A DNA stretch of 64,000 nt from Mobula hypostoma (GCF_963921235.1 NC_086109.1:12524001-12588000), one strand, 5' to 3'; counted from the first letter of the stretch, positions 670-60,131 are shown. Notes: generated by a model not told the origin, from the sequence alone. Program-made: numbers and translations.

Positions 670-761
670 CCCTGTTTTTTCTCTTCAGGTAGCAAAGTAG
701 ACAAATGACAAGTAGTATGAGAAGAGTTCCAACGACACTGAGCACAATTATGTAAGTAGGC
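670..761 (-). CDS. Gene B transmembrane exon: (M)PTYIIVLSVVGTLLILLVICLLCYLKRKNR(G)
   Basis: Acceptor ttctttaccacag, donor gtaggt; 92 nt, phase 2 to 1. About 23 hydrophobic residues followed by the basic stop-transfer KRKNR. No charged residue in the TM. Confidence 0.88.
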
Positions 762-1446
762 CTGTGGTAAAGAATAGGAAAGGGTCAGTCCTGGTTTGAA
801 ACTTATTCTTGGCCATTTGTAAAGTCTGACATTTACACAGCATTTTTCATGCATTCAGGATGTCTGCAGATCAGAAAATGAACATTAGACACTGTTGACA
901 GTGTGGGAAATTGCAATAGCCGATCTGCTCACAGCAAGGTCTCACAAGTAGAAATGTGACCACGACCAATGATAGCGATTTGGTTAAAGAGTAACTATTG
1001 TCCGGGCTATTTGGGAACCCTCACATGTTCTTTTACAAACATTTCATTGGAACTGTTACATTAAAGAATTGATTGGTGGCTTCTTCTCTGACAGACAGAG
1101 TTGCTGACCATGTAGCCGAACCTCTTCTTTGAATGGTTTCCATGGTTTTCTTTGTTTTGCGGCTGTCTGGACCCTTGTTTGGCTTGGACGAGTCAGGCTG
1201 AAGGGCCTGTTGTTCTAATATACAACAATGACTTTAGTACTCAGAATATTTAGGGTAAGAAGATTATCTTTGATCTCAGGCTTGACACCTGTACAAGAAA
1301 ATCAGTTTCCAACACATCATTTCATTGAAGTTAATCATGTCAAATGTTTTTAATACCAGTTAAAGAGAAACAGATTTCTCTCCCAACTGGCTCTATTTGG
1401 AAGGAGTAGCAGTGAAACCAGCCGTAGAGAGAAACTTATACTTTAC

Positions 1447-1525
1447 ATTTTATCTGATTTAGATTCTTCCCCTTGTGTAGTTGTCGTAGATTCTGTCACA
1501 GTATTTTCACAGAAATGGATTGGCC
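1447..1525 (-). CDS. Gene B stalk exon: (G)PIHFCENTVTESTTTTQGEESKSDK(M)
   Basis: Acceptor ttttcttttaacag, donor gtaaagt; 79 nt, phase 1 to 2, which matches the flanking C2 and TM exons. Thr/Ser-rich; the xCE motif is shared with the gene A stalk. Confidence 0.82.
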
Positions 1526-2305
1526 CTGTTAAAAGAAAATCAAATTAAATTTTATCTGCTTTGTATTTGCAAAAACAAGAGAGCACAATCGGTGGACCAA
1601 TGGGTACTTGAGCACGGTAGACCAAAGGTGATCTGTTATCCAATACACATTTAAAGATTAAAGATGAGATTTATTTGTCATATGTTCATCAGATCACACA
1701 GTGAAATGCATTGTTAGCAATGACAACCAACACAGCATATTTTCTGGGGGAAGCCTGCAAGTGTTCCATGCTTCCAGCACCAAAATGGCTTGCCTATGAA
1801 TTACTAATACTTGCCCGTGTGCCTTTGGAACGTGACAGGAAATCAGAGTACCCAGAGGAAACCCACACAGTCACTGGGAGAATGCACAAACAACTTGCAA
1901 CAGTGGTGGGAATTGGGCTCCGGTCGCTGATCACTGGTGCTGTAGTGGTGTTATGCTTATTGCTGTTCTCCTGAGCACCCAATTACATTCACTGACAATT
2001 TGGATTCTTTCCCGTATTCAGGTACTGGTGGTGTGGAGATGCCGCTGGGGACTTGGACTGAGGGAACTGTAATCCCAATCATAAGGGGAAGTTCCAGCCA
2101 GGGAGCTGGCCTCTGCCAGCCATGGGGAGACTTCTTTCCGGGGCCCCATCACCCTCTGCAGGGGCGTGGTCATAACTGTGCTTGAGTATTCAGGCAGATA
2201 ATGGTTCAAGTACACTTTTTATCCAACAGGATAATGCAGGACGTTTTCTCAATGAAAAGGCTGTTCCTCAGTACAAACTCCAATTAAGTGCAATCATTTG
2301 TACAT

Positions 2306-2660
2306 AAACACGAGGAAATCTGCAGATGCTGAAAATTCTAGCAACACACACAAAATGCTGGTGAACCCAGCAGGCCAGGCAGCATCTCTAGGAAGAGGTA
2401 CAGTCGACGTTTTGGGCCGAGACCCTTTGTCAGGTGTAACTGAAAGAAGAGATAGTAAGAGATTTGAAAGTAGGAGGGAGAGGAGGAGATCCGAAATGAT
2501 AGGAGAAGACTGTAGGGGGACAGATGAAGCTAAGAGCTAGAAAGTTGATTGGCAAAAGGGGTACAAGGCTGGAGAAGGGAAGGATCATGGGATGGGAGGC
2601 CTAGGGAGAAAGAAAGGGGGAGGGGAGCACCAGAGGAAGAAGGAGAGCAGGCAAGGAGTT
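2306..2660 (-). mobile_element. Penelope-like element 3' end/pLTR fragment with degenerate hammerhead motif
   Basis: Near-identical to the 3' UTR of the GIY-YIG-coding copy at 19759-20545. Confidence 0.75.
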
Positions 2661-3314
2661 CAACATAAACTCCATCCATCCCTCAGGGAATATTTCATGT
2701 ATTAAAGAGATCCCCTCTGAAGCTTTTAGACTGTTGAGCACGACTCTCAAATGAGATTTGTAGATCTATTAGGTTCAACGAAATGTGAAATGTTTGGTAG
2801 AAACAGCAAAGTTGAGTATTAGAAGTAGTTTAGAATTCATGACAAAACAAAGTAATTGATTAAAGCATTGAAAATACAGAACATGAGCAGGTTTACAGGG
2901 AACATATATACCTATGTGAAAACTTCTATAGATATGTGAAGAGAAGATTAACTAAAACAAATATTGGCCATCTAATAGACCGAAATGGGAGAATTTATAA
3001 TGGGCACAAAGAAACACAAGACCAATTCAATATTTTGGTTTTGCCTTTTGTCCTGCTTCACCACATTTCCTGATAACTCATGTCAGGCTAGTTGCTCTAT
3101 AATTTCCACTCTTCTCTGTACCTCCTTTTTTAAAATAGAAGGGTTAGCATCTCTCCTGTCCATTGGAATTAAATATGGCCGATAATGCATCTATAGTTTT
3201 CTCATGCCAATTCCTTATGTCCTCTGGGATGTAGAGTATCAGAACCTGGAGATTTATTGGTTTTCAGTCACATCAGTTTTCCCATCACCATTCTGATATT
3301 ATTGGTGAATACCG

Positions 3315-4494
3315 ACTTTCTTCTTCTTTGGTTGTCCATCGAAATCGGATGACAACGTCCACTCCTTTAACGGTGTGACCTTTGATGACTATACAGTCCT
3401 ATCCTGGACCCACAAGCTCTATTGCAGGTGGAACATGCATATGTAGTAGTGGTGGAAACCATGGCTGCATTTCTCCTGGCTCTCTTCTGCTGTCTTCTGG
3501 TTGTTCTTTCCATCCCCAGAATACGAACCCCGTCCCTACACAGCTGTCGCCAAGTGATACGGTCAGCAGCAACATCCTCCAGGTCCTTGGGTCTGATCTT
3601 GCACTTCCTTAAAGCATTCTTCATCTGATCCTTATAGCACTTTTTCAGCCCTCCAGCTGAGCGTCGACCATGATGTAGCTGGCCGTATAACACTCTGCGG
3701 GTTAGCTGGCATGGGGGCATCCTTATCACGTGCCCCAGCCATTGCAGCTGACGCTGGGTGATCATGGCCTCCATACTTCTGCAGTTGGTCTTTACGAGTA
3801 TTTCAGTGTGAGACACCCGCTCACGCCAAGTAATTCCCAGGACACACTGGAGGCAGCTTATGTGAAAGCACTCCAAGGACTTGATGTGATGGCCGTAGGC
3901 CATACTTCACAGCTATAAAGGAGGGTGGTGACACAGACTGCTTGGTATACGGCGACCTTTGTGGAGGGACAAAGACTCCTGTTCTGAAAGACTCTACGCT
4001 GAAGTTTCCCAAAGGCAGCTGATGCCTGTTTAATGCGGCTCTGGATGTCGTTGTCAATGCCGCTATCCTCAGACAGAATGCTCCCCAGATATTTGAAAGA
4101 TGGCACTACTAACAGCTTTTCATCACCAACAGTGAAGGCAGGTAGAGTGGGTGGGATGCTGGTACTCCACTGGCAAAGTGGTATTGACAGTCAGCCCAAT
4201 CGTGCTGTACGCTCTCACCACCACAGCAAGGACAGTCTGAAGATCCTCTGGAGTATGGGCCACAAGAGCACAGTGGTCTGCATACTGCAGTTCCAGGTCC
4301 TGCTCTCCACGGAGTTTGGTGGTTGTGTGGAGCCTCCCAATGTCAAAGAGGTTGCCATCTAATCTGACGTCCACTGCCACACTGCTGATGTCTTCAGTCT
4401 TGTTGTGGAGAAGCTTGGTAACACACAAGAGGAAGATGTTAAAGAGCACTGGCACTAGCACACACCCCTGCCTCACCCCTGTTTTACCTTTCAA
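3315..4494 (-). mobile_element. RTE-clade (BovB-like) LINE, 5'-truncated and frameshifted
   Basis: RT motifs (GVRQGCVL..LFNIF, LQYAD, FKYLGS), WLGHVIRMP and a C-terminal zinc finger CSTCNRACGSRIGLYSHQRSH spread over ORFs 3367-4494. Confidence 0.9.
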
Positions 4495-4645
4495 TAAACC
4501 CTCTGATCTCCAGTATTTCTGGGAGAGTAATTGTTTCCCATATCTCTTAATCTCTCCACCTCTGAAAAAAGTAACTAGATCTTACTTGAATACATGTTCA
4601 TCACTTTCTGGGAGAAGAAATCTTTCCTAGTCGCAGTCTTAAATA

Positions 4646-5256
4646 TGAGGGATGATTGATAAGTTCATGGCCTAAGGTAGAAGGAGTCCGTTTTAGAAAA
4701 CCTAGCACACTTATTTTCCAACATAGTCCCCTCCTACATTTACACACTTAGTCCAGCGGTTGTGGAACATAAGAATCTTGGACCTCCAGAAAGTGTCCAC
4801 AGCATGGGTGATTGATAAGTTCGTGGCCTAAGGTAGAAGGAGATGCGTTACAGCGTTACACAGCTCTCGTTACATGCACATGCAGTTCAACTCCTTGAGT
4901 GATTATACAGAAAGTTTGAAGTTAATAAATAACTCATTGGGGTGATTGATAAATGTGTGGCCTAAGGTAAAAGGAGATGAATTATTAACTTCAAACTTTG
5001 TACATAATCACTCAAAGAGTTGAACTGCATGTGCATGAAACTAGAGCTGTGTTACTCATCTCCACCTACCATAGGCCACAAACATAAAAATCATCCCTGC
5101 TGTGGACACTTTCTGGAGGTCCAAGATCCAAATGCTCCACGACCGCTGGACTAAGTGTGTAAATGTAGGAGGGGACTATGTTGAAAAACAAATGTGCTAG
5201 GTTTTCTAAAATTGACTCCTTCTACCTTAGGCCACGAACTTATCAATCACCCCTCA
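4646..5256. mobile_element. Palindromic mariner-derived MITE with TA target-site duplication
   Basis: TA at 4644-45 and 5257-58; arms of about 200 bp are inverted copies; the right arm encodes the mariner C-terminal motif RWTKCVNVGGDYVEK. Confidence 0.85.
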
Positions 5257-7282: not shown

Positions 7283-7603
7283 CCATGCTGTTGACTTCAA
7301 TCACATTTCTGCAGGTCCTGACACTGTTGGAGATGGATACGTTGACCATTTCACTGGACATTGTTCCATTAACATTTGAGGCTTTGCAATAATATAGATG
7401 ATTTTTGTATTTTAAGGATTGACAGCGTAGATCCAGTTTATTTGTGTCAGAGATCTTTGAATCCACAGATGGGGTCTTTTCATACCATGAGTACTGAATG
7501 GGAAGGGATCCATGGACAGACTCACAGGACACTGATACAGAGTCCCTACAACTTGAGCCACTTGTTGGTGGTGAAAATCGAAGCAAAGGAACAGACACGG
7601 GTT
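7283..7603 (-). CDS. Gene B second (membrane-proximal) C2-set Ig exon: EPVSVPLLRF...SCES...YSWY...YYCKASN...TCRNVIEVNSM
   Basis: 321 nt, phase 1-1, acceptor ttttccacag, donor gtaagt; canonical Cys-Trp-Cys; paralogous to the three other C2 exons. Confidence 0.93.
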
Positions 7604-8252: not shown

Positions 8253-10285
8253 ACGTGACAAGATAGGCCAAAGCCAGCATTGTTTCCTGAAAGGAAAATC
8301 CTGCCTGACAAACATACTGTAATTCTTTGAAGAAATTACAAGCAGAGTAGACAAAGGAGATGCAGTAGACGTGCTGCACTTGGATTTTCAGAAGGCCTTT
8401 GATAAGGTGCCATCCATGAGGCTGCCTAGCAAGATAAGAGCCCATGAAATTATAGGGAAGTTACTAGCGTGGGTGGAGCATTAGCTGGTCGGTAGAAAAC
8501 AGAGAGTGGGAATAAAGGGAATCTGTTCTGGCTGGCTGCCAGTTACCAGTGGAGTTCCACAGGGGTTGGTGTTGGGACTGCTGCTTTTTACGATGTATGT
8601 TAATGATTTCAACTACAGTATTAATGGACTTGTGGCTAAATTTGCCAATGATACAAAGATAGGTGGAGGAGCGGGTAGTGTTGAGGAAACAGAGAGCCTG
8701 CAGAGAGACTTAGATAGTTTAGGTGAATGGGCAAAGAAGTGGCAAATGAAGTACAATGTTAGAAAGTGTCTGGTCATGCACTTCGGTGGAAGAAATAAAC
8801 AGGCAGACTATTATTTAGGTGGGGAGTGAATTCAAAGTGCAGAGATGCAAAGGGACTTGGGAGCCCTTGTGTAAGATACCCTAAAGGTTAACCTCCAGGT
8901 TGAGTCAGTTGTGAAGAAGGCGAATGCAATGTTGGCATTCATTTCTGGAGGTATATGTAGAGGTTTCTTCTTTTATGTTATTGCATAGGCTAATTAAAAT
9001 GGATTCTTTGTTATGTTATAATTAAAATGGCTTCTTTGTTATGTTAACAGCTGAGAAAGTTCTCCCGCTAGCAGCTTGTTTGGATTATGTTATTGATAAG
9101 AGTGTGAACAAACCAATTGGGATAGATGTTATTCTTTCTAGTGTGTCTGTGAGTTCGTGTGATGCGCGGGTTTTTGGGCAGAAGGCGCGATGGAGAGCAA
9201 GAGAATGGACAAGGTGCTGTGAACCAATTAACGAGGTCGAACCCCGAGCAGGAGTCCGAGATCCAGGGTCTTTGGCGAGGAGAGGAGATGGAGACAGACT
9301 CGTGTGGTGTGTCTGGTCCACCACTGTGGTTGGTCCCAGGTGGCAGGTCGAGGTGGTCAGAGGGGATCGAATGGTGAAGAGAGGATGTTACTAGAGCTCC
9401 AACTGTCGTGCACGAAGGGATTGAACTTTGATAAGTGTGGCGCTTTATATTTTATCTCTATTAATTATATAGTTCCAGTAATATCTATAAACTGTCATTC
9501 ATTTGATTGTATATGGTGTATTGTCTGTTATTTGGCAGGGTGGGGTACATCACACAGCATCCACACAAACTTAATTACCCAGTTTGGCGGGTCCGAGGGC
9601 TGTTTCCCTAGACGACAGTGAGTTGAGCGACCCTGAGGCTTGCCGGGGGGCTACATATAGAATAAATATAGGGATGTGATGTTGAGGCTCTATAAGGCAT
9701 TTGTGAGACTACACTTGGAGTATTGTGTGCAGTTTTGGGCTCCTTATTTTAGAAAGGATATACTGACATTAGAAAGGGTTCAGAGATGATTCACGAGAAT
9801 GATTCCAGGAATGAAAGGGTTACTGTATAAGGAACATCTGGCAGCTCTTGGGCTGAATTCCCAGGAATTCAGGAGAATGAGGGGGGAATCTCATAGAAAC
9901 GTTCCGAAGATTAAAAGGGCTGAACAGATTAGATATGGCAAAGTTATTTACCATGGTAGGGGATTCGAGGACAAGAGGGCACGACTTCAGTATTGAAGAA
10001 TGTCCTTTTAGAACTGAGATGCAGAGAAATTACTTTAGTCAGAGGGTGGTAAATCTGGAATTTGACGCCCTGAGAAGCTCTGGAGGCCAAGTCACTGGGT
10101 GTATTGAAGGCAGAGATAGATAGGTTCTTGATTAGCCAGGATATCAAAGAGTATGGGGAGAAGGCAGGGGAGTGGGGATGACTGGAAGAATTGGCTCAGC
10201 CCATGATTGAATGGAAGAGCAGACTCGATGGGCCGATTGGCCTACTTCTGCTCCTATATCTTATGGTCTTATGGTCTTATGGTCT
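8253..10285 (+). mobile_element. CR1 LINE RT/3' fragment interrupted by a solo LTR
   Basis: WLPVTSGVPQGLVLG..FANDTKIGG; (ttatggtc)n 3' tail at 10260-10285; CR1 sequence resumes directly after the LTR. Confidence 0.88.
8956..9655. mobile_element. Solo LTR (TGTAG...CTACA) with 4-bp TATA TSD
   Basis: Inverted termini TGTAG/CTACA; tata at 8952-8955 and 9656-9659; inserted inside CR1. Confidence 0.85.
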
Positions 10286-12277: not shown

Positions 12278-12598
12278 CATCAGATACTTGTAGATACACG
12301 TTAAATATTGGAGAATTGCCAGATGATGTAATTACACATATGTAATCCCCTGTATCGTTAGAGTCAAGGTGCTCCATAGTAACAGTAAATATTCCCTGGG
12401 ATGTGTTATCTCTGATTGTCATTCTTCCATACTGCTCATTTTGCCCATTTGTATTCACTCTGGATGTGCATCGGCGATCCCATATGCGGCACAAAAACTT
12501 TGAGTTTGAGCGATATATTAGTGCATAGTGCCAATCGATTGTGATCGCTCTTCCCACAACTCCTCTCACTTTATCTTCTGCCCATAAAGCACCTGAAA
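12278..12598 (-). CDS. Gene B second V-set Ig exon (divergent; canonical Cys->Trp and Trp->Leu)
   Basis: 321 nt (315 with the inner acceptor), phase 1-1, donor gtaggt, open frame; ...ITIDWHY...KFLCRIWDRRC...DTGDYIC. Confidence 0.9.
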
Positions 12599-18127: not shown

Positions 18128-18448
18128 TGGTGCCATTGATTTCTGTCACGTAGCTGCAGATCTCTCCGTTGTTGAAGACTGTCACATTAACCGTTGCACT
18201 GGATCTTGCTCCAAGCCAATTCAAGGCTCTGCAGTAATATCGATGGTGCTGCTGGTTGAAGGATTGACAATGTAAAGCCAGTTTATTGGTGCCTGATACC
18301 TTTTGATACCCAGATGAGGTTTCTTCATACCAAGTATACTGAATGGGAAGAGATCCCTGGAAACACTCACAGGAAACTGACACTGAGCCCCCGAGACGTG
18401 AGACATTTGCTGGTGACAGATATCGAAGCACAGGAACAGACACAGGTT
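18128..18448 (-). CDS. Gene B first C2-set Ig exon: EPVSVPVLRY...SCECFQ...YYCRALN...ICSYVTEINGT
   Basis: 321 nt, phase 1-1, acceptor cccacag, donor gtaagt. Confidence 0.93.
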
Positions 18449-19386: not shown

Positions 19387-19707
19387 CAACAGATACTTGT
19401 AGATCTACGTAAAATAATGGATCATAACCGACTGTTGTAATTCCACAGCTGTACCATCCTGTATCTCTGGTTTGAAGATTCTCCATAGTAACAATAAATA
19501 TTCCCTGTTCCGGGTTATCTGTGATTGACACTCGTCCACTCCGTCCGTGTTGCCTATTTGTTTCCACTAAAACTGAACAGTGACGAGTCCGTCCACGGCA
19601 CCAATACTTTGTGTGTGAGCGGTACGTTGCTCCATAGTGACAATCGATTGTGATCACTCTTCCCACAACTCCTCTTACATATTTCTCTGCCCACAATGCA
19701 CCTGAAA
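19387..19707 (-). CDS. Gene B first V-set (CD300/pIgR-type) Ig exon
   Basis: VSGALWAEKYVRG..IDCHY..KYWCRGRTRHC..DTGWYSC; 321 nt, phase 1-1, donor gtaggt. Confidence 0.93.
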
Positions 19708-22708: not shown

Positions 22709-22745
22709 CAGGTAGGAAACCAATCAGAATAATCGAAGGCCACAT
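22709..22745 (-). CDS. Gene B leader (signal peptide) exon: MWPSIILIGFLP
   Basis: ATG at 22745, 37 nt, donor gtgagt, phase 1; paralogous to 60095-60131. Confidence 0.9.
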
Positions 22746-22819
22746 CATTTTATTCACAGGATCCAGCTCGGATCTATCTGTCCTCAGAGAGAAATAACTG
22801 TAAAATAAAATGGAAGAAG

Positions 22820-22875
22820 AAGTCAGCGGGAAGTTTGATCAAAAAAACCACAGTGACCCAACTGCTGTGTGGTAT
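22820..22875 (-). promoter_or_regulatory. Gene B proximal promoter: Ets (GGAAGT) and two RUNX (ACCACA/TGTGGT) motifs
   Basis: cgggaagt 22827-34, aaccaca 22846-52, tgtggt 22868-73; same order and similar spacing upstream of gene A. Confidence 0.55.
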
Positions 22876-23329
22876 GTGACAATCTGAAAAGCTTTCAGTT
22901 ACATTTAGCAATACAGAAACATTTAAGCAATTCCCCAAGACTGAATGAATTGGTGAGAAGTTTTAAAACGGTAGGTGCAAGCAACAGCAAATGATTTGAT
23001 CGGAAGGAACAATAAATGGCTGGAAGGTTTCCGAAGCAGGAGATTAATCTGAAATGTTGATCACTCTGCCTCTGTAGATTCCACCTGATTCACCATGTTC
23101 CTCCGGAAGTTGGAGAAGCAGACTTGATGCGCCAAATGGCCAACTTCTGCTTCTAAATCTTATGGTCTTATGGTCTAAATTTTATTTTTTGCTTAATTAA
23201 AATGTTAGCTGTGGTGAGTCATTGGGGAAAATGTTCATAGTGAAAATTTAACGGTGGAAAGGGAAAGAGCCCATGTTGAGTGTTGTGACCGAGATTGAAA
23301 GTTACCTCACCACTAGTACTGCCCAGAAG

Positions 23330-24830: not shown

Positions 24831-25618
24831 ATTGTAGTGTGAGGGTTGAGGTGATCCAAGAATGTGGCTCATTTATTTTGTCCTGAATTTTTGTTGCTGA
24901 CTTTACAATTGTTTAGAAATAGATAAATGATAAAATAATTCAGTTTACACGGAGAGCTTTTGTTACTTTGGGTTTGTTACATTTGTCCTGGGGGAAACAG
25001 TGCAGCGTATTAGCCGTGAATTTATATCTGCTTAGATTCTGTACATTGCATAGTATGAGTGCTGGCTCTATTGCATCAGTCACTGCTGTCAACTGTGTAA
25101 TGTTCACCTTCAGTGAAGGATAAGAGAGGTTAAGATAAGGAAAGCTGAAACTTTATTTACCCCAAAGGAAATTATTGTTGCAAAGATGCATAGTCAGACA
25201 TATACTGTATACTTTAAAATACAAAAATTACACATTGATGTGCTTAGAACTTCTATCCTTTTTACTTGACTTAACAGAATATGGAGAAGTACCAGTGGTT
25301 GCTATACACTGACAGAAGTTCCGGTCTCTTTCTGCATTGCTCCATCACTTTTTGGAAAACTTCTCAGTGACTATTGTGCAATATACTGACGTGAACAAGT
25401 GCAGAGATACAAAACATCTTCAGCAAAGCATTTTTGTTTCTGCAACTAGAGCAATGAACAACAATAACAGTCTGGTGAAGAAAAGTGAAAAGGCCACTTA
25501 GCCATTGTGTTTAAACCTAATCCCAATCGGTGGGATAACGGTGGGATTATAAAACATTTTTCATTCGGTGTTGAGAAGTTATCCAAGAACTGAGGCTTTA
25601 TAAGGTATTCATCAGATC

Positions 25619-29202: not shown

Positions 29203-30209
29203 GTACATTCATGGGTTACAGTCACAGATCAGTACTGAGAAAAGTTATACCTTCTCTTTGCAGACTCATGCCCTGATGACCAAAGCAAGTTGCAGTAATT
29301 TGCAGCTCACTCATTTTATTCAGCACACAACTTGTATTTCCATAGCTCATTCTCCTTTAAGACCTTTGTACAGTGATTGGAAATTTTCATTCTTGTGTCT
29401 CTTTCTCACTCCATTTCTACAAAATGTGTTCTGAAACGTCAGCAATCATGCACCTTATCAAAGTTCCAAAAGTACGTGGTAAATTTATTATCAAAATACA
29501 ATTATGTCAGCATATGCCACCCAGAAAGTCATTTCCTTGCTGGTGTTCACAGTGGGACAAAGAAATACAACAGATTCAATGAAGATTAACACAGAGATAT
29601 GGACAAAGAAACAATCTGTAAAGGAAGACAAACTGAAAATACAATAAATAAATAAATAAATATATAAAACTGAGAACATGTGTTGTAGATTCCTTGAAGG
29701 TGAGTTCAGAGGTTGTGTTCAGTGATCATTTCAGGGTTGAAGTGAGTGAAATTAATCCATGCTGGTTCAGGAGCCTGATGGCTGAATTGTTCCTGAACCT
29801 GGTAGTGTGGGATCTGAGGCTCCTGTACCTCCTTTCCATTGGCAGCAACAAGAAGAGAGCATGTCTGGATGGTGGGGGTCCTTCATGATGGATTCTGCTC
29901 TCTAGTGCCAGGATTCCTTTGCAGATGTATTCACTGGTGGGCTGGGCTTCACCTATCAACTAATCAGATCAATCTTAATCAATCTCCATAAGGACTATCC
30001 CTGAGTAATGAATGGGTTCTGTTTTTGCAGATACCTCCAGGCCAATTTTACCCGTATGTCAGAAAGCACAACAAATATCACTCAATATCATATCCATACC
30101 TCCATGGTATTGTAATGAAAGGCATCAACTGCATATAAAACTGACAAGAAAGAGTAATTCTGAAAAGAGGAGAGAAAGGAAACTAGTTCTGTTATTTGTA
30201 AGAATGGAG

Positions 30210-32132: not shown

Positions 32133-32169
32133 ATGTGGATTTTGATTCGTCTAATTCATTTCCTACCCA
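32133..32169 (+). pseudogene. Inverted leader exon copy: MWILIRLIHFLP
   Basis: 37 nt, ATG at 32133, donor gtgagtgacaaccag identical to the gene B donor context; Arg and His in the hydrophobic core; no plus-strand Ig exon found downstream in the window. Confidence 0.85.
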
Positions 32170-33419
32170 GTGAGTGACAACCAGTATGGGAGATTTTCAT
32201 AATCCATTTCAGATTGGGGGTCGTGCATCATTTCCAGAACAGAGCGTGAATATTTGTAGACACCAAAGATGCTGGAAACTGGAATTTCAGAGAAAACTCC
32301 CGCAGGAACTCAGCAGGCCATGCAGTGTCTGTCAGGGGGAAGAGAACTGTCGAAGGTTTGGGTCAAGACCCTGCATAGAATCTGAGTGGAGGGGGATCAT
32401 TGTGTAAATAAGAGAGTGGACATTGTGAAAATAACTGTCAAATCAAAATAAGGAAGGAAGGAGCAGGAAGTCCGATTTTGAAACCTTAGCAAACCAAATG
32501 AAGTGTGATATGTGACAATATGAAAAACTCATAGTTATATTTAACAAAATAAAAAAAAATTCCTATTGATCAGTCTCCAGAGAAAACAATCCTTGTTTAT
32601 ACAACTTCTGCATGCAACTTACATGCTCTCATCCAGAAAATAAGCAAGCAAACCTTTTCTTCAGTTGCTCCCCTGAAGGGTTTGCACCTTTCCCATTATG
32701 TAGCTACCAGAACTACGCACATACTCCAAATGTGTCTTAAGCAAAGTTTTATACAGCTGTTACATGCATTCATAACTTTTTTGGTTAATGTCCTGACTGA
32801 AGGCTGTTTTACCACCAAAATTACATCTGTCTATGTTGCCACCTTCACAGAGTTATGGACCTGAACTCCAAGATTTGCATATCCTTCTGGATCTGCCTTG
32901 GTGATAATTCAGTCAAATCTGTTTTGGAGAAGCTGCCTCTCGAGAGCAATGCAGGGAGCAGACATGACGTAGAAGGGGCCTTTCATGCAAACAAACTCAG
33001 CATGCAATACATAGCTTCATTTCCTTTCAAGACTGTGTCAGATCTTTTGAGCCAACTTTTAAATTCACCTCTTCTGAAATGCATTGTATTGGTCAGTGTA
33101 GTTTCAAAAGCTACGATGGGATTTCACTTTACTTCAGTTCAGTACTAGGGTGAAATAGTGGATCGAATTACACATTACACATTATCACGGTGGTAAAATT
33201 CATGCCAGCTCTGTTCTTGAGTCAAATCAGGAAATGGAAATGGTCTGCGTGAGTCATTTAAATATTTCTCATAGAATGATACAGGACAGAATTTGGACAG
33301 GCCACATGTACAGTATCTATTGACCCTATGTTCTCTCTCACCTCTAACCTAGCACACCCTCACTCACCTTGTCAGCTAATGGAAATTGCCAATTCCACAA
33401 TATTCAGTACAACAACAAG

Positions 33420-37963: not shown

Positions 37964-38014
37964 TCACTTTACCTCCTGGACCATCAGGCTGAAAAGATCA
38001 GATTCATCACGTCT
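37964..38014 (-). CDS. Gene A probable terminal coding exon: RRDESDLFSLMVQEVK*
   Basis: Nearby good acceptor (gccttttccag) downstream of the phase-0 TM donor; no tyrosine. No paralog in the window to confirm it. Confidence 0.5.
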   Translation of the reverse strand, partial: RRDESDLFSLMVQEVK

Positions 38015-38277: not shown

Positions 38278-38368
38278 CTTCGTTTCTCTTGTGAACCACA
38301 TGACTGAAATCGTGCTGATCATCAGGAGAGCGAAGAGCATCCAACGACCCACCTTCCATATCATGAAA
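38278..38368 (-). CDS. Gene A transmembrane exon: (S)FMIWKVGRWMLFALLMISTISVMWFTRETK
   Basis: Acceptor ctcttcccctttgctcag, donor gtaggc; 91 nt, phase 2 to 0, fits the stalk exon; hydrophobic run with Lys/Arg at the outer end. Confidence 0.82.
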
Positions 38369-40450: not shown

Positions 40451-40496
40451 CTTGCAGTTGACGCTGTTGTAAATGTTTCACATGAATATTCACGTC
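40451..40496 (-). CDS. Gene A stalk exon: (G)REYSCETFTTASTA(S)
   Basis: Acceptor ttttctttccttgtttcaacag, donor gtaaac; 46 nt, phase 1 to 2; xCE motif as in the gene B stalk. Confidence 0.8.
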
Positions 40497-41623: not shown

Positions 41624-41944
41624 CCCCGTGACTCAATTCCATCAGATACTTGTACTTCCCTCCTCTGTTGTAGATGGATATGTTCACCATTTCACTGGAT
41701 TTTGTTCCAAGAATATTTGTGGCTTTGCAGTAATATTGATAGAGTTGGTGTTTGAAAGGTTGACAATGTAGATCCAGTTCATTGGTGTTTGAGATCTTTG
41801 AATCCATAGATGGTGTCTTTTCATACCATGAGTATTGAATGGGAAGGGATCCCTGGACAGACTCACATGACATTGATGCTGAATCCGCAAGGTGTGAATC
41901 GTTTGGAGCTGACAGAAATCCAAGTACCGGAACAGATACGGGTT
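41624..41944 (-). CDS. Gene A second C2-set Ig exon: PVSVPVLGFLSAPNDSH...SCES...YYCKATN...ELSHG
   Basis: 321 nt, phase 1-1, acceptor ccgcag, donor gtaagt, open frame. Confidence 0.92.
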
Positions 41945-43105: not shown

Positions 43106-43426
43106 TGTCAGAGACTCGTAGATGTACGACAAATGTTGGATTGTTGCCAGATGTTGTAATTCCACATCTATACCACCCTGTATCTCCAGAGCGAAGATCC
43201 TCCACAGTAACAGTAAATATTCCCGGCCCTGGGTTATCTGTGATTGACCGTCTTCCACTCTGTCCTTGTGTCCCATTTGTTTCCACTAAAACTGTACACT
43301 GGTGATCCCACATGCGGCACCAATACTTTGTGTGTGAACGGTACATTGGTGCATAGTGACAATCGATTGTGATCGCTCTTCCCACAACTCCTCTTACTTT
43401 ATCTTCTGCCCATAAAGCACCTGAAA
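43106..43426 (-). CDS. Gene A second V-set Ig exon
   Basis: ALWAEDKVRG..IDCHY..KYWCRMWDHQC..DTGWYRC; phase 1-1, donor gtaagt. Confidence 0.93.
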
Positions 43427-46824: not shown

Positions 46825-48190
46825 TAACCCTCTTCCCTGCTTCGCTATAAACTGAAAATCAATAGAGAATGCATCTCAACTCTCTACACAACATACTATT
46901 TAATACAACTACTATATACAGATATCCAGAGCATTGTAAATTTTAAACTGTTCCATTCAGGCCTAAAGATTTAATTGCTATGCACAATTTCATACTCTTG
47001 TGAGATAACGTCTTTCCTGACGAGGAGGATTACTCTGCTTGTCAGGTGAGATTTACGGCTGTGTAACAATCTCAGGACCTGCAATTTCTCTTCGTTGTTT
47101 GGCCTGCATACTCCTTCTGAGAATGGGTTTGAGGAGAACCAAGTGTGAGCACAAGTAATGACCCAGGAGCAGCACAGCTGGTGAGTTGTTGGCTATGAGG
47201 TGTGCTACTAGCAAGCTTCTGATTCAGTGTCAGTGTGGTGTATTTTACTGACGTTTCTCGAAGTGCCTTCTTTAGACTCTGGACAAACATTTCCACAAGC
47301 CATTTGTAGCTTGGTGGTATGGTCCAGATGTAATATGTGTCGTTCCATTCATTTTCAGGAATGATTGCCACAAACTGTAGTCCATTGTCACTGACTTGGT
47401 GTTCTGGAACACCATTCCTTGAGAAGAGGCTTCTGAACACATCAACAGTGTGCAAGGCTGTAGTGGAAACTATTGGGAACATTTCTGGCCACTTTGTAGC
47501 TGCATCCACTACTACAAAGAAATCTGTGCTCATGAATGGTTCGGCAAACTCCACATGGATCCTCTTTAGTCCTATGCAGGCCATTCCCAGGAAGGCAGAG
47601 GGGCTGCTCTTGGCATCTTTTGGGCATGCTGGCATCCCAGAGAGTGCATGGCAACCTGCTCAGTCTAATGTTCTTTCCCAGACTACCAAACAAAACTTAG
47701 AGCTAACGCTTTCATTTTGACTTCACCTAGATGACTAGCATATGGCTAGTCTAACACTTTAGCTCTCAACTTCGATGGTACTCTCAATACCCACTAAGGC
47801 AACCCCTGTCAAGGGCAAGTTCATCCCAGTGCTAGTATAAAAAAGGAACTGGAGATCCTGCTGCACATTTCAGCCATTTTGGGTGGCCATGTAGACCTGA
47901 GACAGTGTGGGGGAATTTTTTTTTGGTTTTCCTTTGGATCATCTCTGCCACAATAGGGAGACTTTCAATTTGCTTAAGGGAGAATACATCGAGGAGTGTC
48001 CTACTTTGTAAATATTCCAGTATTTCCTTTTCCAGCAGTAAATAGGACAATCCATCAGCATTTCCATTTTTAATTGTGCTCCTGAATTCAGTCTTGTAAT
48101 TGAGTCCTCCAAGAAACAGAGACCCTCTCTACATTCATGCTGCTGATGTTTGTGGAACACCCTTCTGTGGATTGATAATGGACACCAGTG
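46825..48190 (-). mobile_element. Gypsy pol fragment (RNase H end plus integrase), degenerate
   Basis: RIHVEFAEPF..FFVVVDAATKWPE..FSRNGVPEH.VSDNG.QF. Confidence 0.88.
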
Positions 48191-48194
48191 TTTG

Positions 48195-50215
48195 ACAATA
48201 GACAGTAGACAATCGACAATAGGTGCAGGCGTAGGCCATTCGGCCCTTTGAGCCAGCACCGCCATTCACTGTGATCATGGCTGATCATCCACAATTAGTA
48301 TCCAGTTTCTCCCTTATCCCCATAACCTTTGATTCCGCTATCTTTAAGAGCTCTATCTATCTCTTTTTTGAAAGCATCCAGAGACTTGGCCTCCACAGCC
48401 TTCTGGGGCAGAGCATTCCATATATCCACCACTCTCTGGGTGAAAAAATTTTTCCCCAGCTCCATTCTAAATGGCCTACCCCTTATTCTTAAACTGTGGC
48501 CTCTGGTTCTGGACTCACCCATCAGCGGGAACATGCTCCCTGCCTCCAGCGTGTCCAATCCCTTAATAATCTTATATGTTTCAATAATATCCCCTCTCAG
48601 CCTTCTAAATTCCAGAGTATACAAGCCCAGTCGCTTCAATCTTTCAACATTTGACAATCCCGCCATCCCGGGAATTAACCTTGTGAACCTACGCTGCACT
48701 CCCTCAATAGCAAGAATGTCCTTCCTCAAATTTGGAGACCAAAACTGCCCACAGTACTCCAGGTGTGGTCTCACCAGGGCCCTGTGCAGCTGCAGAAGGA
48801 CCTCTTTGCTCTGATACTCAATTCCCCTTGTTATGAAGGCTAGCATGCCATTAGCTTTCTTCACTGCCTGCTGTACTTGCATGCTTGCTTTCAGTGACTG
48901 ATGTACATGAACACCTAGATCTCGTTGTACTTCCCCTTTTCCTAACTTGACTCCATGTAGATAATAATCTGCCTTCCTGTTCTTACCACCAAAGTGGATA
49001 ACCTCACATTTATCCACATTAAACTGCATCTGCCATGCATCTGCCCACTCACCCAGCCTGTCCAAGTCACCCTGCATTCTTATAACATCCTCCTCACATT
49101 TCACACTGCCACCCAGCTCTGTGTCATCGGCAAATTTGCTAATGTTACTTTTAACTCCCTCATCTAAATCATTAATATATATTGTAAACAGCTGCGGTCC
49201 CAGCACTGAACCCTGCGGTACCCCACTGGTCACCGCCTACCATTCCGAAAGGGACCCATTAATCGCTACTCTTTGTTTTCTGTCAGCCAGCCAATTTTCA
49301 ATCCATGTCAGTACTCTGCCCCCAATACCATGTGCCCTAATTTTGCCCACTAATCTCCTATGTGGGACTTTATCAAAGGCTTTCTGAAAGTCCGGGTACA
49401 CTACATCCACTTGCTCTCCCTTGTCCATTTTCATAGTTACATCCTCAAAAAATTCCAGAAGATTAGTCAAGCACGATTTTCCCTTCGTAAATCCATGCTG
49501 ACTTGGACCGATCCTGTTACTGCTATCCCGATGTGTCATAATTTCATCTTTTATAATTGACTCCAGCATCTTTACCACCACCGACGTCAGGCTAACTGGT
49601 CTATAATTCCCTGTTTTCTCTCTTCCTCCCTTCTTGAAGAGAGGGACAACATTAGCCACCCTCCAATCCCCAGGAACTGATCCTGAATCTATAGAACATT
49701 GGAAAATGATTACCAATGCGTCCACGATTTCTAAAGCCACCTCCTTAAGTACCCTGGGATGCAGACCATCAGGTCCCGGGGACTTATCGGCCTTCAGACC
49801 CAGCAGTCTACCCAACACCATTTCCTGCATAATATAAATTTCCTTCAGTTCATCCATTACCCTAGGTCCTTTGGCCACTATTATATCTGGGAGATTGTTT
49901 GTGTCTTCCCTGGTGAAAACAGATCCAAAGTACCTGTTCAACTTGTCTACCATTTCCTTGTTCCCCATAATAAATTCACCTGCTTCTGTCTTCAAGGGCC
50001 CAATTTTGGTCTTAACTATTTTTTTTCCGTTTCACATACCTAAAGGAGTTTTTACTATCCTCCTTTATATTCTCGGCTAGTTTACCTTCGTACCTCATTT
50101 TTTCTCCGTGTATTGCCTTTTTAGTTACCTTCTGTTGCTTGTTAAAAGTTTCCCAATCCTCCGGCTTCCCACTCGTCTTTGCTATGTTATACTTCTCTTA
50201 TACTTTTATACTGTC
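48195..50215 (-). mobile_element. CR1 LINE inserted in Gypsy; RT with one in-frame stop
   Basis: ORFs 49237-49995 and 48295-49233 are separated by TAG; (ctattgt)-type 3' tail, different from the 25619 copy. Confidence 0.95.
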
Positions 50216-52060: not shown

Positions 52061-52381
52061 TAGTGCCATTGATTTCTGTCACATAACTGCAGTTCTCTCC
52101 ATTGTTGAAGATGGTCACGTTGACCATTTCACTGGATTTTGCTCCATGCCAATTTGAGGCTGTGCAGTAATATTGATGACGTTGATGTTTGAAGGATTGA
52201 CAATGTAGATCCAGTTTATTAGTATCTGAGATCTTTGAATGCCCAGATGAATTGTTTTCATACCATGTGTACTGAATGGGAAGGGATCCCTGCACAGACT
52301 CACAGGACACTGTCACTGAGCCCCCGAGACGTGAAACATTTGCTGGCGACAGAAATCCGAGCACTGGAACAGACACGGGTT
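52061..52381 (-). CDS. Gene A first C2-set Ig exon: EPVSVPVLGF...YYCTASN...NCSYVTEINGT
   Basis: 321 nt, phase 1-1, acceptor ttctttcccacag, donor gtaagt. Confidence 0.93.
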
Positions 52382-52831: not shown

Positions 52832-53152
52832 CGTCAGATACCAGTAGATATACTCCAAACAGTGGATTGTCGCCAGATGTTGTAATTCCACAACTGTACC
52901 ATCCTGTATCTCCAGGGTGAAGATCCTCCATAGTAACGGTAAACACTCCTCGTATCCGGTTATCTGTGATTGACACTCTTTCACTCCGTTCTGGGTGCCC
53001 ATGTGTTTCCACTACAGTTGAACATGGGTGGTTGAATCCAATGCACCAAAATTTTGTGTGAAAGAGGTACATTGCTTCATAGTGACAATCGATTGTGACT
53101 GTTCTTCCCACAACTCCTCTTACATATTTCTCTGCCCAAAATGCACCTGAAA
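52832..53152 (-). CDS. Gene A first V-set (CD300/pIgR-type) Ig exon
   Basis: VSGAFWAEKYVRG..IDCHY..KFWCIGFNHPC..DTGWYSC; phase 1-1, donor gtcagt. Confidence 0.93.
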
Positions 53153-54354: not shown

Positions 54355-57300
54355 AATATTTTCATTTTAAAATCTTTTGAATAATTATTATTGAAGATTA
54401 ACAAAAAAAATACATTAAAGTACTCAAGTCAACATGTCAATATGTAAAATGAGGAATTAAATTAACAAATAACTGATTAGCAAAGCTAAACAATATATCA
54501 ATAATAAGAAGAAAAAATCAAGTGTTAAAACTATTTTGTTTTTGGAAAAAAGAAAGAAGGGAAAAAGAACCCCTACTAACTAAAACAAAAAAACCCTGCT
54601 AACAAAAAACCCGAAAAAAATCCCCATTGGGAGCACGACCCCAGAGCTATACGCCATACAAGCTTCCATAAAAGAAAAACATCAATCCGCCAACTCAAAT
54701 CCATTTAAACAAGAATCAGAAGGAAACCATCTAAATTAACTCAAATCAGATGATGGTAGTGGGCAAAAGAACTCCACCTTTTCTCAAAGTCAAATCGAGG
54801 ATCAAAAGTTTGACTTCTGATTTTCTCCAAACTAAGACATAGCATCACCTGAGAGAACCATTGTATCAAAGTGGGAGCAGGGGCATCTTTCCATTTCAAT
54901 AAAATAGCCCTTCTGGCCAATAATGTAACAAATGCAATTACATGTTAGTCTGATATTGAAGTACAATGAATATATTGAGGGATTATACCGAACAAAACTG
55001 TCAATTTATTAGATTGTAAATTATTTTTTAAAGCTTTAGAAATTGTAGAGAAAATAGATTTCCAAAACTGTTTCAATATAGAACATAACGAAAACATATG
55101 TGTCAATATGGCTCTCTCAGTTTTACATCTATCACACTGATTATCAACATTAGGAAATATTTTATACAGTCTCTCCTTCGTCAAATAGTAACGATGTACA
55201 ATTTTAAATTGAATTAAAGAGTGACTGGCACAAATCGAAGAAGACTTAACCAACTTCAAAATTCGCAACCAATCCTCTGTTATCAAGGTCATGTTAAGCC
55301 CTCTCTCCTAATCTTGCTTAATCTTAGGTGAAGGATAATTGTACTGTTGTAATAGTAAATAATAAGTTTTCCCAATAAAACGTTTCACTAAAGGATTCAC
55401 TTTTAAAATAATGTCTAACAGGTCAGAATCCTGTATATATGGAAAACTACTTAAATATTCTTGTAAGAAATGTCTGACCTGAAGATATTGCAATAAATGT
55501 GAGAACGAGAGAGAGTGTTTAGTTACTAATTTCTCAAAAGACATCAATCGGCCTTTTTGGAACAGATCCATGAAGGGATAGACTCCCTTATTCCTCCAAA
55601 GAAAAAAGGTAGGATCACTTAGTGAAGGTTTAAATAAATAATTTTGATAAATTAAACTAAGAAGGTTAAATTTTCTGAGATTAAAAAAATTACGAAACTG
55701 GTACCAAATTTGGCCAGTTAACAAAAGTGTAAGTGGGTTCCATCTACAAAATAATTGCTTCATAAAATCCACTAAAGGAACCAAATTAGCTCCATAAAAG
55801 TCCCTGTAATTTTTACTGATAATAAGACCTAAATATTTAAAAGAGTCCGTAACTTTAAAAGGAATGTCATCATATATAGAAGCAAAATCATTTAGAAGAA
55901 ATAATTCACTTTTATGAAGGTTTAGTTTACATCCCAAAACTTTCCAAATTCATTTAATAATTTCAATAAACTAGGAATGCATTCTTCAGAATTTGGAACA
56001 TAAACTAAGAGATCATCTGCATAAAAGGATATCTTATGAATAGTCCCATTTATGGAAATTCTCTTTTTTCTAAATTTAAACTTTTTTCTAAATTTAAATT
56101 ATATGATGAGAGGAGCGGAGTTAACGACATTATTGAACATATCCGATATAAGCTGTTGGTCTAGCCCTGTTTTGTTTTTTTTTCTTCTTGGGGGTTTTTT
56201 TCTTTTTTTCTTTTGGGTTTTTTTTCGTTTATATATTTTTTTTCTTTTTATTTCTTTTTTAATGTTTCATCTCATTACGAGTTTGGAAGTCTTTTATATC
56301 TCTGTTACTTAAAATTCATTTTATGTACGTTGATGAACATTTTTCCAATCTCTTTGTACCAACTTTGTTATTGAGTTTGTAATTTTGAAAAATTAATAAA
56401 AAGATTTAAAAAGAAAGAAAGGAAATTCTATGGATATCTTTAGCTTCACGAAGTGCAATGGCCAAGGGTTCCAACAACAAATTAAATAACAGGGGACTTA
56501 GCGTACATTTTTGTCTTGTACCCTGCGAAAGTTGAATAAAAGGAGATCTGCAATTATTAGTAATAACAGTAGCAATAGGGCTTTTATATATCACTCTAAT
56601 CCACTTATTAAAATGAGTACCAAAGCTGAATTTCTCTAAAACGTTAAATAAGTATTTCCATTCAACTCTATCAAATGCCTTTCCAGCATCAAGAGAAACA
56701 ACACATTGGGGAGTCTTAGAAAAGGATAAGGATATGACATTTAACAGTCTCTAAGTATTAGAGAAGGAATAACGGCTCTTTACAAAACTTGTTTGGTCCT
56801 GAGAGATAATTTTAGCTAGAATATTCTCCAGTCGATTAGCTATTACTTTCGAAAGAATTTTAGCATCCACATTTAATAATGAAATGGGTCTATATGTAGC
56901 GCAGTCAGTAGGGTCTTTATCTTCCTTTAAATTAAAGAAGTAGAAGCTTCATAAAATATGGGAGGTAACTCTCCTAACAAAAAAGAATCTTTAAGCTTTT
57001 CTGACATATATGGAGGAAGCAATTTTTCAATTTTTTTATAAAATCCTACAGAAAAAACATCCAATCCAGGAGCTTTACCAGATTGTATTGAAAGAATAGC
57101 TTTCTGAATTTCTTTTTCAGTAATAGGAGTATCAAGAGTTTGTTGATCTTCAACAGATATTCTAGGAAAATCAATCTTTTGTAAAAGGGCATTCATTTTA
57201 GAAGGATCAGCTGGAAACTGAGATTTATAAAGTTCAATGTAACAGTCTTGAAAAATTTTATTAATGTCTTCATAATTACAAGCTAAACTACTGTCTCCCT

Positions 57301-58240
57301 TATGAATTTTTAAAATTTGTCTTTTAGCTCTAGCTGCCTTTAATTGGGATGCTAATAGCATATTATTTTTACCTCCAAACACATAAAATTGACTTTTCAA
57401 TTTAAGCAGATTTCTTTCAATAGGATAAGTTAATAGTAAATTATATTGTGATTGAAGTTCAACCATTTGTTTAAATAAATCAATGTTAGGAGAGATTGCA
57501 TAAATATTATCCAAGTCTTTAATTTGTTTTGAAATCTTATCTAACTCTGTTTTTGTCTAGTTTCTCTAGAGTCTAGTAACTCTAGTTTCTTAACCTTAGC
57601 TAAATAGGAGATTATCTGACCACGCAAATATGCTTTAAATGTATCCCATATAATCAATTTCGACACATTTCCCATATTGTTAAAAAGGTAAAAAGTCTTT
57701 TCTGAGTCTCAATAAATTTGACAAAGTCTGAACTTTGTAATAAATTTTCTGGAAAACACTAATGCAAGTTTACAATACTGACATCATTCAATTCAAAAGC
57801 TAAGCTTAAAGGCGCATGATCCGAAACGACGATAGCGACATATTCATATTTCTGGACTTTGGACAAAAATTGGAAATCAGCTATAAAATAATCAATTCTC
57901 GAATTTTTTTGTGAACATGTGAATAAAAGGAATAATCTCTGTCATTAGGATGTAGATGTCTCCAGATTTTGATCAAACCATAATTGATTAAAGAAGAGTT
58001 AATAGTGATGCCGAACAACTTGGAAGCTGCTGATTGGTTGAACTCTTGTCAATCAAAGGATTTAAACAACAGTTAAAATCACCACTCATTAATAACATAT
58101 ATTCGTTTAAATCTGGCAATAAACCAAATACATTTTTTAAAAAAAGAAGGATCATCTACATTAGATCCATACAGATTAACCAGGACAAATTTTCTATTAC
58201 AAATTGTTCCTTTGACAATTAAATATCTATCATTAGTATC
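54355..58240 (-). mobile_element. L1 ORF2 (endonuclease, RT, C-terminus) plus 3' UTR, degenerate
   Basis: GDFN, SDHAPL, GKAPG.D.F, YRPISLLNVDAKIL, LDA.KAFDRVEW, GTRQ.C.LSPLLF, YADD, FKYLG. Confidence 0.92.
56063..56420 (+). mobile_element. L1-type 3' fragment inserted antisense into the older L1, with 9-bp TSD
   Basis: GGAAATTCT at 56054-62 and 56421-29; aataaa plus A-rich tail; the host RT frame rejoins across it (KDIHRISINGTIHKISFYADD). Confidence 0.8.
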
Positions 58241-59049
58241 TGACACAATGTCTTCTTAGATAAATAAAATATTAAATTTAATAAAAAATAGACATTCCCT
58301 TTGTTTTATTTTGACAAGTGGCATGAGATTGAAGGCCCTTCCACATTTTAAAAAATCTATTTTGATGGCCTGTTCTGATATGCGCTTCCTGAGTTTGAGT
58401 ATTTTACAACAGTGGTCGGACCAATTTTGCATCAGGAAGTCCAGATGTGATTTCAAATTCCATGAGGGGACATTGATAATTCAAATACAATTTATTATTT
58501 AATTCTGGAATTAATAACCATGTATCAATAATGATAAAATAATTATAATGATCAAGAGACCTCTAGGTGGTTACCAAAATTGTACGAGAGTTGCAAAGCC
58601 ACATTAGGGATGGAAATCTAACATCCCTACCCAATCTGGTTTACCCATAAATACAGAACTATCAATCTTCTTGACTATTAATTGTGCCCCCCCCTCACTG
58701 AAATAGCCCCATAAAGACACCAAATTCAAGAGAACAATGCTGATCTTCACTGCAATCAGTGCACTACAAGATCAGATTCTAGTACTGGTAACCAGATTTT
58801 CCCACTTAACATTCTCCAGCAGTATTCTCCACCCCTACCTCTTTTTCCAATGTCTGCTTCCTCTCCCACCCACATGCCTCTGTCTCCCAACTGCACCCCT
58901 CTCCCTCCCGGCTCCTTCATCCCCACTTCCCCCTTGGTCCCTCTGTCACCTATTTGACCCTGATTCACACATTGTTCTGTCCTCTTTACACTACACACTG
59001 TGACCACGTTACTGTGTACCTATTAAAGAAGCCACTTTCAATACCCCTT

Positions 59050-59548
59050 TTTCCTAATAAAGTGGCTACTGAATGCATGTTTGTGGTCATCTGCTGTACT
59101 CTATCAACTTCAACGTTTGACGTGTTGTGTGTTCAGAGATGTTCTTCTGCATACCAATGTTGTAATGCTTGGTCATTTCAGTTATTATCACCTCTCTGTC
59201 AACTTGAACCAGTTTAATCATCCTCCTCTGACCTCTCTCATTCACGAGGCAATTTTGCTCACAAAGCTGCTGCTCGCAGGATGTTTTTTGTTTTTGTTTC
59301 TCAGATTATTCTCTTTAAACTCTACAGAAAATCACAGGAGATCAGCAGTTTCTGATATGCTCAACCCATCCCTTCTTACACCAACAGTGTCACCTAAATC
59401 ACATTTCTTCCCCATTCTGATGGTAGGTCTGAACAACAACTGACCTCTTGACCACATCTGCATTGAGTTGCTGCCGCATAACCGGTGGACTGGATATTTA
59501 CATAAACGAGCAGGTGTTCAGCTGTACCTAAAATGGTGGCCACTGACT
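59050..59548 (-). mobile_element. Tc1-like transposon remnant
   Basis: Reverse-oriented match to 18510-19032 and 44410-44950, with gtggccactga termini. Confidence 0.75.
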
Positions 59549-60094
59549 GTATCTTCACTCTCCACTTCCAATCTGATGCAGGGCCTCGGCCCAAAATGTT
59601 GACAATTCCCCTCCTTCCGCAGATACTACTCAACCTGCTGAACTCCAGTCATTTGCTTCGAACTTTGCATTCCGGCATTTGCAGTCTTTTATGTCTACAC
59701 ACATTAGAGCAACGTAGAATGGTCTGGCACCCTTCGGCCTAACCAGTTCATTCTGAGCACAGCGCCTATATAGTTAGTCTAAGTTTTCTGCATTTGGTTC
59801 ATTTCCGTCCAAGCCCAACACCTCTGTGTACTTAATGAAAAGTCTCCTAAATGATACTACTGCACCTGTATTCAACAGTACTGCTATCATTTCCTTCTAC
59901 AATCCACTGGGTACTCCTCAGGTGCTTTTTAAATCTTTTCCATCTCATCCTAAATATACGCCAACCACCACCCCCCCCCACGCACTTAAATTCTGTACTC
60001 GACTAAATCTAGGGAAGCACTCTGCTGCGCAAATGGTGCACTATACCCAACCTAACACTGATGATGTGAATGTCCTGCGCTGGCTTTCACTCAC

Positions 60095-60131
60095 CAGGTA
60101 GGAAACTAATCAGCAGAACTGAAATCCACAT
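60095..60131 (-). CDS. Gene A leader (signal peptide) exon: MWISVLLISFLP
   Basis: ATG at 60131, 37 nt, donor gtgagt, phase 1. Confidence 0.9.

Follow-up and report, generated by a model that had tools for sequence, protein, structure and literature searches.

The window analysed here, a stretch of 64,000 nucleotides from Mobula hypostoma (GCF_963921235.1 NC_086109.1:12524001-12588000), contains two tandem genes for receptors with immunoglobulin (Ig) domains, gene A (60131-37964) and gene B (22745-670, with its tail beyond the left edge), which are very probably two adjacent members of the modular domain immune-type receptor (MDIR) multigene family, gene A being MDIR5-like and gene B MDIR3-like, most likely under separate promoters. 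The window is free of N, and both genes, like every feature of interest, run on the minus strand. Eight Ig exons were delimited, each of exactly 321 nt, in phase 1 at both ends and flanked by AG and GT; Pfam assigns four of them to the V-set (E values from 4e-7 to 3e-14) and the other four, which alternate with these, to Ig_3, Ig_2 or Ig_C17orf99. The two genes follow the same plan, with a 37-nt leader, the domain order V-C2-V-C2 and a stalk exon bearing an xCE motif. The extra C-C' cysteine pair (WCxxxxxxC) is present in all four V exons, with LC replacing WC in the second V domain of gene B (B_V2; domains are labelled as in Table 1).

The transmembrane (TM) exons of the two genes share no sequence similarity and end in different phases, and the family proteins match one or the other. 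The original prediction for this stretch had placed two tandem genes with a common ectodomain exon plan and unrelated TM exons between positions 670 and 60131. This picture was borne out: the eight Ig exons, the two leaders and the xCE stalks were all located, the TM segment bears Arg and Lys (WKVGRW) in gene A and is uncharged in gene B, and the limits of the span coincide exactly with the end of the gene B TM exon and with the ATG of gene A. The exon reading is far beyond chance, since the exons match at 100% a RefSeq protein of this species, XP_062921374.1 (P0151, LOC134355435, 1025 aa), which reproduces without a mismatch 440 residues of gene A and 484 of gene B and thereby places the window at this locus of the lesser devil ray.

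Once spliced, the eight exons of gene A give an intact open reading frame of 502 residues with canonical junctions. The stretch IWKVGRWMLFALLMISTISVMWF is the only hydrophobic segment of gene A long enough for crossing the membrane, and the Arg residue would lie inside the bilayer, because a helix begun after it would have only 17 residues. Among the family proteins with the pattern W-x-[VIL]-G-[RK]-W, the [RK] position is occupied by Arg in 27 out of 27 and by Lys in none, and the residue preceding VGRW is variable (K, T, S, M, E, N or Q). The cytoplasmic tail, formed by TRETK and RRDESDLFSLMVQEVK, has 21 residues and lacks tyrosine, so that the charged TM segment with a short Tyr-free tail anticipated for this gene is indeed seen. 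A further hydrophobic stretch at about 40261 was dropped as a feature, as no homologue supports it. The alternative 3' exon (Table 1) would swap the short tail for 77 unrelated residues, and looks like exonised intergenic or repeat sequence.

Gene B is open across its seven in-window exons, all with canonical splice sites, and a tblastn search with family tails detected no cytoplasmic exon within positions 1-669. The tail can be read in the RefSeq protein P0151, not in the window DNA, where about 100 residues follow the TM segment. Two canonical immunoreceptor tyrosine-based inhibitory motifs (ITIMs) are found there, IVYADL and VTYADI, together with NVYANV, a near-ITIM that is one position off, and the same three tyrosine motifs are present in the tail of the Hemitrygon orthologue P0013. 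Residues 904-1005 of P0151, which comprise the TM segment and tail, matched the Pfam SIT model below the threshold. The long tail with these three motifs upholds the expectation that gene B does not share the tail type of gene A.

The assignment to the MDIR family is based on homologue searches and on trees of the individual domains. When one V exon was used as query in an exhaustive HMMER search, 124 proteins were recovered at E<=1e-30, the closest ones from rays and skates; a word-indexed search that started from P0013, a stingray protein resembling gene B, recovered 111 members of the family, which come from batoids, sharks and a chimaera. The majority of these 111 carry the automatic names 'polymeric immunoglobulin receptor-like' or 'Fc receptor-like protein 5', and three are named modular domain immune-type receptor 3, 5 and 2, from clearnose skate. 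The M. birostris orthologue of gene A (P0200), 98.4% identical to the gene A of the window, can be aligned with skate MDIR5 over 493 of its 502 residues, with 64% identity and two gaps, from the leader through the four domains, the xCE stalk and the WKVGRW TM segment to the KRDES tail. For the part of P0151 that corresponds to gene B, the alignment with skate MDIR3 covers 584 residues at 54% identity and takes in both the uncharged TM segment and the tyrosine motifs. In the PMC3031540 passage that deals with MDIRs, these are presented as multigene activating and inhibitory families related to CD300, TREM, FCAR and pIgR, and the family of clearnose skate is traced to Cannon 2006.

Domain parsing of 40 batoid proteins gave V-C-V-C as the commonest layout, combined with either TM type in five ray species (Mobula, Hemitrygon, Hypanus and skate), and among 241 family proteins there are 27 Arg-TM forms and 65 multi-ITIM-like forms. 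In the domain trees the sequences fall into position-specific clades, with a support of 84-100% for the clade of V domains of the third-position (D3) type and of 91% for a clade of membrane-proximal C2 domains in which those of MDIR5 and MDIR3 are found. These position-specific clades include skate, and therefore the four-domain plan predates the split between skates and stingrays. Three features of MDIRs are found together here, namely collinear homology over the full length, position-specific V and C2 modules, and both charged-TM forms with a short tail and ITIM-tailed forms. The proposal of an undescribed family with a chimeric architecture has consequently to be abandoned, since gene A is collinear with MDIR5 (64%) and gene B with MDIR3 (54%), and the combination of V and C2 domains is a defining trait of the described MDIR family, not a new one. 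In the search and the per-domain phylogeny suggested along with that proposal, the skate MDIRs were returned by name and the domain clades include skate MDIR5 and MDIR3.

A closer comparison with the named proteins supports these correspondences. Skate MDIR5 (ABC86800.1, P0202) has 501 residues versus 502 in gene A, with the same leader, V-C2-V-C2 order, xCE stalk, WKVGRW TM segment and KRDES-containing short tail, and the identity is 63-64% from end to end with only 2 gaps; it differs in belonging to another batoid order (a skate and not a myliobatiform ray) and in its C-C' and FG loops. Skate MDIR3 (ABC86797.1, P0176) shares with gene B the V-C2-V-C2 core, the uncharged TM segment and a long tail with several [IV]xYAx[VI] motifs, but has an extra N-terminal V domain (V-V-C-V-C) and keeps the third-domain Cys that is Trp in gene B. 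The likely orthologue of gene B is P0013 (XP_072886821.1), a Hemitrygon akajei protein named 'polymeric immunoglobulin receptor-like', with the same V-C2-V-C2 layout, third and fourth domains (D3-D4) 85-91% identical, the Cys-to-Trp change in D3, and the same stalk, TM segment and three-tyrosine tail; on the other hand, its first domain (D1) is only 67% identical, and RefSeq annotates it as a stand-alone gene of 597 residues.

Table 1. Exons and promoter-proximal regions of genes A and B in the window (V, V-set-type domain; C, C2-type domain; P0151, RefSeq XP_062921374.1; P0200 and P0221, Mobula birostris; P0013, Hemitrygon akajei)
Feature	Position	Strand	Remarks
Gene A exon 1, leader MWISVLLISFLP	60095..60131	-	37 nt coding, donor GTGAGT; N-termini of P0151 and P0200 identical
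Gene A exon 2, V domain 1 (A_V1)	52832..53152	-	V-set 3.5e-11; 100% to P0151
Gene A exon 3, C2 domain 1 (A_C1)	52061..52381	-	Ig_3 1.6e-9; PDB FcRL5 5.6e-42
Gene A exon 4, V domain 2 (A_V2)	43106..43426	-	V-set 2.3e-12; PDB pIgR 9.6e-54, CD300f/CLM-1 4e-18
Gene A exon 5, C2 domain 2 (A_C2)	41624..41944	-	100% to P0151 and P0200
Gene A exon 6, stalk (G)REYSCETFTTASTA(S)	40451..40496	-	46 nt, xCE motif (GREYSCETF...); P0200 stalk identical
Gene A exon 7, TM FMIWKVGRWMLFALLMISTISVMWFTRETK	38278..38368	-	91 nt, ends in phase 0; membrane Arg, variable Lys; matched by 41 family proteins
Gene A exon 8, tail RRDESDLFSLMVQEVK and stop	37964..38014	-	no Tyr
Gene A alternative 3' exon	29729..29959	-	92% identical to that of isoform X3 (P0221) of the M. 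birostris orthologue
Gene A promoter-proximal region/5' untranslated region	60132..60320	-	block conserved with gene B
Gene B exon 1, leader MWPSIILIGFLP	22709..22745	-	37 nt, donor GTGAGT; an in-frame ATG 3 nt upstream would make 40 nt
Gene B exon 2, V domain 1 (B_V1)	19387..19707	-	V-set 2.6e-14; 100% to P0151 442-547
Gene B exon 3, C2 domain 1 (B_C1)	18128..18448	-	321 nt, phase 1; Pfam
Gene B exon 4, V domain 2 (B_V2)	12278..12598	-	B-strand Cys to Trp, C-strand Trp to Leu
Gene B exon 5, C2 domain 2 (B_C2)	7283..7603	-	90% to P0013
Gene B exon 6, stalk (G)PIHFCENTVTESTTTTQGEESKSDK(M)	1447..1525	-	79 nt, xCE (GPIHFCENT...); 100% to P0151 869-895
Gene B exon 7, uncharged TM PTYIIVLSVVGTLLILLVICLLCYLKRKNR	670..761	-	92 nt, ends in phase 1; 100% to P0151 896-925
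Gene B promoter-proximal region	22746..22935	-	block conserved with gene A

The searches against solved structures place the individual domains. With the V exon the best matches in the PDB were pIgR (9.6e-54, over several domains) and CD300f/CLM-1 (4e-18), along with CD300a and NKp44, and weaker ones were TLT-1, the IgM receptor FAIM3 and TREM; with the C2 exon the match was FcRL5 (5.6e-42 over five domains), FcRL4 and CD22 being weak. These matches to solved pIgR, CD300 and FcRL5 structures settle the fold classes, in agreement with the pIgR/CD300-like V and FcRL-like C2 domains that had been predicted. The likeness to Ly9/SLAMF3, also put forward at that stage, holds for the domain order, which is V-C2-V-C2 in that receptor too, but not for the sequence, as no SLAM chain appeared in either PDB search (E<=0.01).

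The receptors share with CD300 and pIgR the V domain with an extra C-C' cysteine pair and, with CD300, the existence of activating members with a charged TM segment and inhibitory members with ITIMs. However, the ectodomain of CD300 is a single V domain, whereas that of genes A and B consists of four Ig domains, half of them C2; in mammalian pIgR the domains are five, all V-type, whereas here V alternates with FcRL-like C2; and the TM segments and tails of CD300 and pIgR are unrelated to those of genes A and B. A pIgR would show a V-only ectodomain and a long tail with sorting signals, and here the C2 domains are interleaved and the tails are of 21 residues (A) and of the ITIM type (B). The C2 exons resemble FcRL5, the name that RefSeq gives to several family members, but the FcRL ectodomain is C2-only, with no CD300-type V domain, and here V-set domains occupy positions 1 and 3. 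Genes A and B are therefore not members of CD300, pIgR or FcRL, since the domain composition of each of these families differs from theirs.

Several observations weigh against two intact MDIR genes of opposite signalling type. The tail exons of gene B are placed about 4.4 kb to the left of the window, outside the DNA analysed; B_V2 is devoid of the canonical disulfide; a review (PMC5742104) states that cartilaginous fish lack the FcR gamma chain; and P0151 joins A_C2 directly to B_V1 in a model with eight Ig domains and a gene span of 64.5 kb, a junction that preserves the reading frame, every Ig exon being phase 1-1. The RefSeq model skips the stalk, TM and tail exons of gene A and the leader of gene B. 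Read as it stands, it describes a single gene in which a promoter at 60.2 kb drives an inhibitory receptor of eight Ig domains (A1-A4, B1-B4 and the ITIM tail), while the stalk, TM and tail of gene A serve as an alternative 3' end, and the locus would make activating 4-Ig and inhibitory 8-Ig forms. Beyond P0151 itself, which is exactly that model, and the symmetric exons that keep its junction in frame, models with at least six Ig domains exist in other species. Such a single gene is nevertheless quite unlikely. The 3' exons of gene A are intact, canonical and conserved with M. birostris, whose gene A orthologue (30.4 kb) ends with its own TM segment and tail in all four isoforms. A separate gene begins in that sister species 6.95 kb downstream, precisely at the position equivalent to the start of gene B, which agrees with the 6,984 nt that separate, in the window, 22745 from position 29729, where the alternative 3' exon has its lower coordinate. 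Gene B, in turn, has a leader typical of the family, with a GTGAGT donor, and a promoter-proximal block like that of gene A. Automatic gene models of tandem paralogues are, besides, prone to fusion.

The 120 nt upstream of both ATGs are 73% identical between A and B, and the identity falls to background further out. In this block TGTGGTTTT is followed by ACTTCC in both genes, at about -90 to -110 from the ATG (60220-60245 and 22835-22860, minus strand); the former is RUNX-like and the latter ETS/PU.1-like, a combination that would fit haematopoietic expression. Taken together with the intact 3' exons of gene A, the leader of gene B and the annotation of the sister species, this makes it very probable that the locus holds two genes, most likely with separate promoters, and not one. 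No stand-alone M. hypostoma model of the 502-residue gene A was found in the 90% cluster of the M. birostris orthologue. XP_062921374.1 thus probably fuses two genes and hides an intact MDIR5-like activating receptor, an annotation error that can be corrected.

The third domain of gene B could also be taken for a sign of a decaying pseudogene, since ITIDWHY in place of ITIDCHY and KFLC in place of KYWC break the Ig core by removing its Cys and Trp; the F-strand Cys and the extra C-C' pair are kept. This explanation is very improbable. The Cys-to-Trp change is also seen in P0013 of H. akajei, and was for this reason rejected as a mark of decay; the Trp-to-Leu change is common to a wider clade of D3 domains; and the seven in-window exons are open, with canonical splice sites. 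Both changes are old and kept across genera, which argues against decay of gene B. An inhibitory MDIR lineage that keeps a V domain without the canonical disulfide across stingray genera is a small structural curiosity.

With two MDIR genes side by side, the relation between them has to be considered. That they form an activating/inhibitory pair was part of the original prediction, and part of it stands: the genes are adjacent, have the same layout and are of opposite signalling types. The near-identity of ectodomains expected for such a pair is not seen, the identity between domains at the same position being 65, 77, 66 and 58%. A strict paired receptor with a common ligand, as in KIR2DL/DS, SIRP alpha/beta or PILR alpha/beta, would account for the adjacency, the identical exon plan and the opposite signalling modules, but is unlikely, as the nearest relatives of each domain are found in other genes or species. 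D3 and D4 of gene B are 85-91% identical to those of the inhibitory Hemitrygon protein P0013 and its second domain (D2) shares 86% identity with an inhibitory gene of Hypanus; the domains of gene A, its Mobula orthologue aside, have their nearest relatives in genes other than gene B. In addition, the membrane-proximal C2 domain of gene B belongs to a clade with full support, most of whose members are inhibitory, and the variable C-C' and FG loops are unlike between A and B. By these comparisons A and B are old paralogues, not a recent duplicate pair or a recent activating copy of an inhibitory gene; the cluster in which they lie is rich in transposons and probably large.

As to signalling, the Arg-bearing TM segment of gene A would pair, by analogy with mammalian receptors with Arg or Lys in the membrane, with an adaptor carrying an immunoreceptor tyrosine-based activation motif and an acidic (Asp) residue in its own TM segment. 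The ITIM tail of gene B, as given by the RefSeq protein, may recruit SH2 phosphatases once its tyrosines are phosphorylated.

A role as Fc or polymeric-Ig receptor of cartilaginous fish, with immunoglobulin as the ligand, is suggested by the V domains, closest to pIgR and also matching the IgM receptor FAIM3, and by the C2 domains, closest to FcRL5. According to a 2017 review (PMC5742104) no FcR- or pIgR-related gene and no FcR gamma chain are present in cartilaginous fish, which would leave such a role vacant. The idea is very unlikely to hold and is pure speculation; the same V type occurs in lipid-binding CD300 and TREM receptors, a large and fast-diversifying cluster fits innate receptors for patterns or self ligands better than a dedicated Ig transporter, and the tail bears no resemblance to that of pIgR. 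A broader version, that the Ig receptors long sought in cartilaginous fish are the MDIRs and that these still show what the ancestor looked like before the split into V-only pIgR/CD300 and C2-only FcRL, would draw on the presence of pIgR-type V and FcRL-type C2 domains in one chain, in Arg-TM and ITIM forms, and seems just as doubtful. At the level of domains, the strong pIgR and FcRL5 matches show that the statement of the review on FcR/pIgR-related genes is too strong (PMC5742104), and MDIRs deserve a place in accounts of the origins of Fc receptors.

The MDIR family was already known from clearnose skate (2006), with its modular build of V and C2 domains and its division into activating and inhibitory forms, and the locus itself is in RefSeq; the abstract of Cannon et al. 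2006 reportedly mentioned the similarity of MDIRs to FcR homologues. Literature searches on pIgR/CD300/shark and on DAP12 in cartilaginous fish returned no direct study of these receptors. As a new species' copy of a known family, the locus leaves little scope for discovery.

Apart from the two genes, the window contains an orphan leader and an orphan stalk exon, and many paralogues per species are found on one chromosome-scale contig. Introns and intergenic space are filled with transposon remnants (25598-28042, 48295-49995, 47072-47635, 55308-57514, 3367-4494 and 8506-8829), which include reverse-transcriptase open reading frames (RVT_1 1e-31, 4e-16 and 9e-12) and a piece of an integrase core that did not reach the Pfam threshold; the remaining long open reading frames of these regions gave no Pfam match among those scanned.

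The orphan leader is a third leader-like exon, MWILIRLIHFLP, located between genes A and B on the plus strand (32133-32169, 37 nt, with a GTGAGT donor at 32170) and preceded by the AAATAAAAC box typical of the family. Its hydrophobic core is broken by Arg and His, and no Ig exon follows it on the plus strand within the window. The gene table of the locus lists a 1350-residue V-set model on the plus strand across the whole region, and this exon may be part of that long automatic model or an orphan relic. The stalk-type exon (…SYSENSEIRFNDTARSS…) lies on the minus strand at 61148-61234, about 1 kb upstream of the gene A leader, and nowhere in the window is it followed by a TM exon of the activating type. 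Its identity to stalk repeats of P0007 and P0094, two MDIR-like proteins of H. akajei, is 62%, and it is probably a relic of another family gene.

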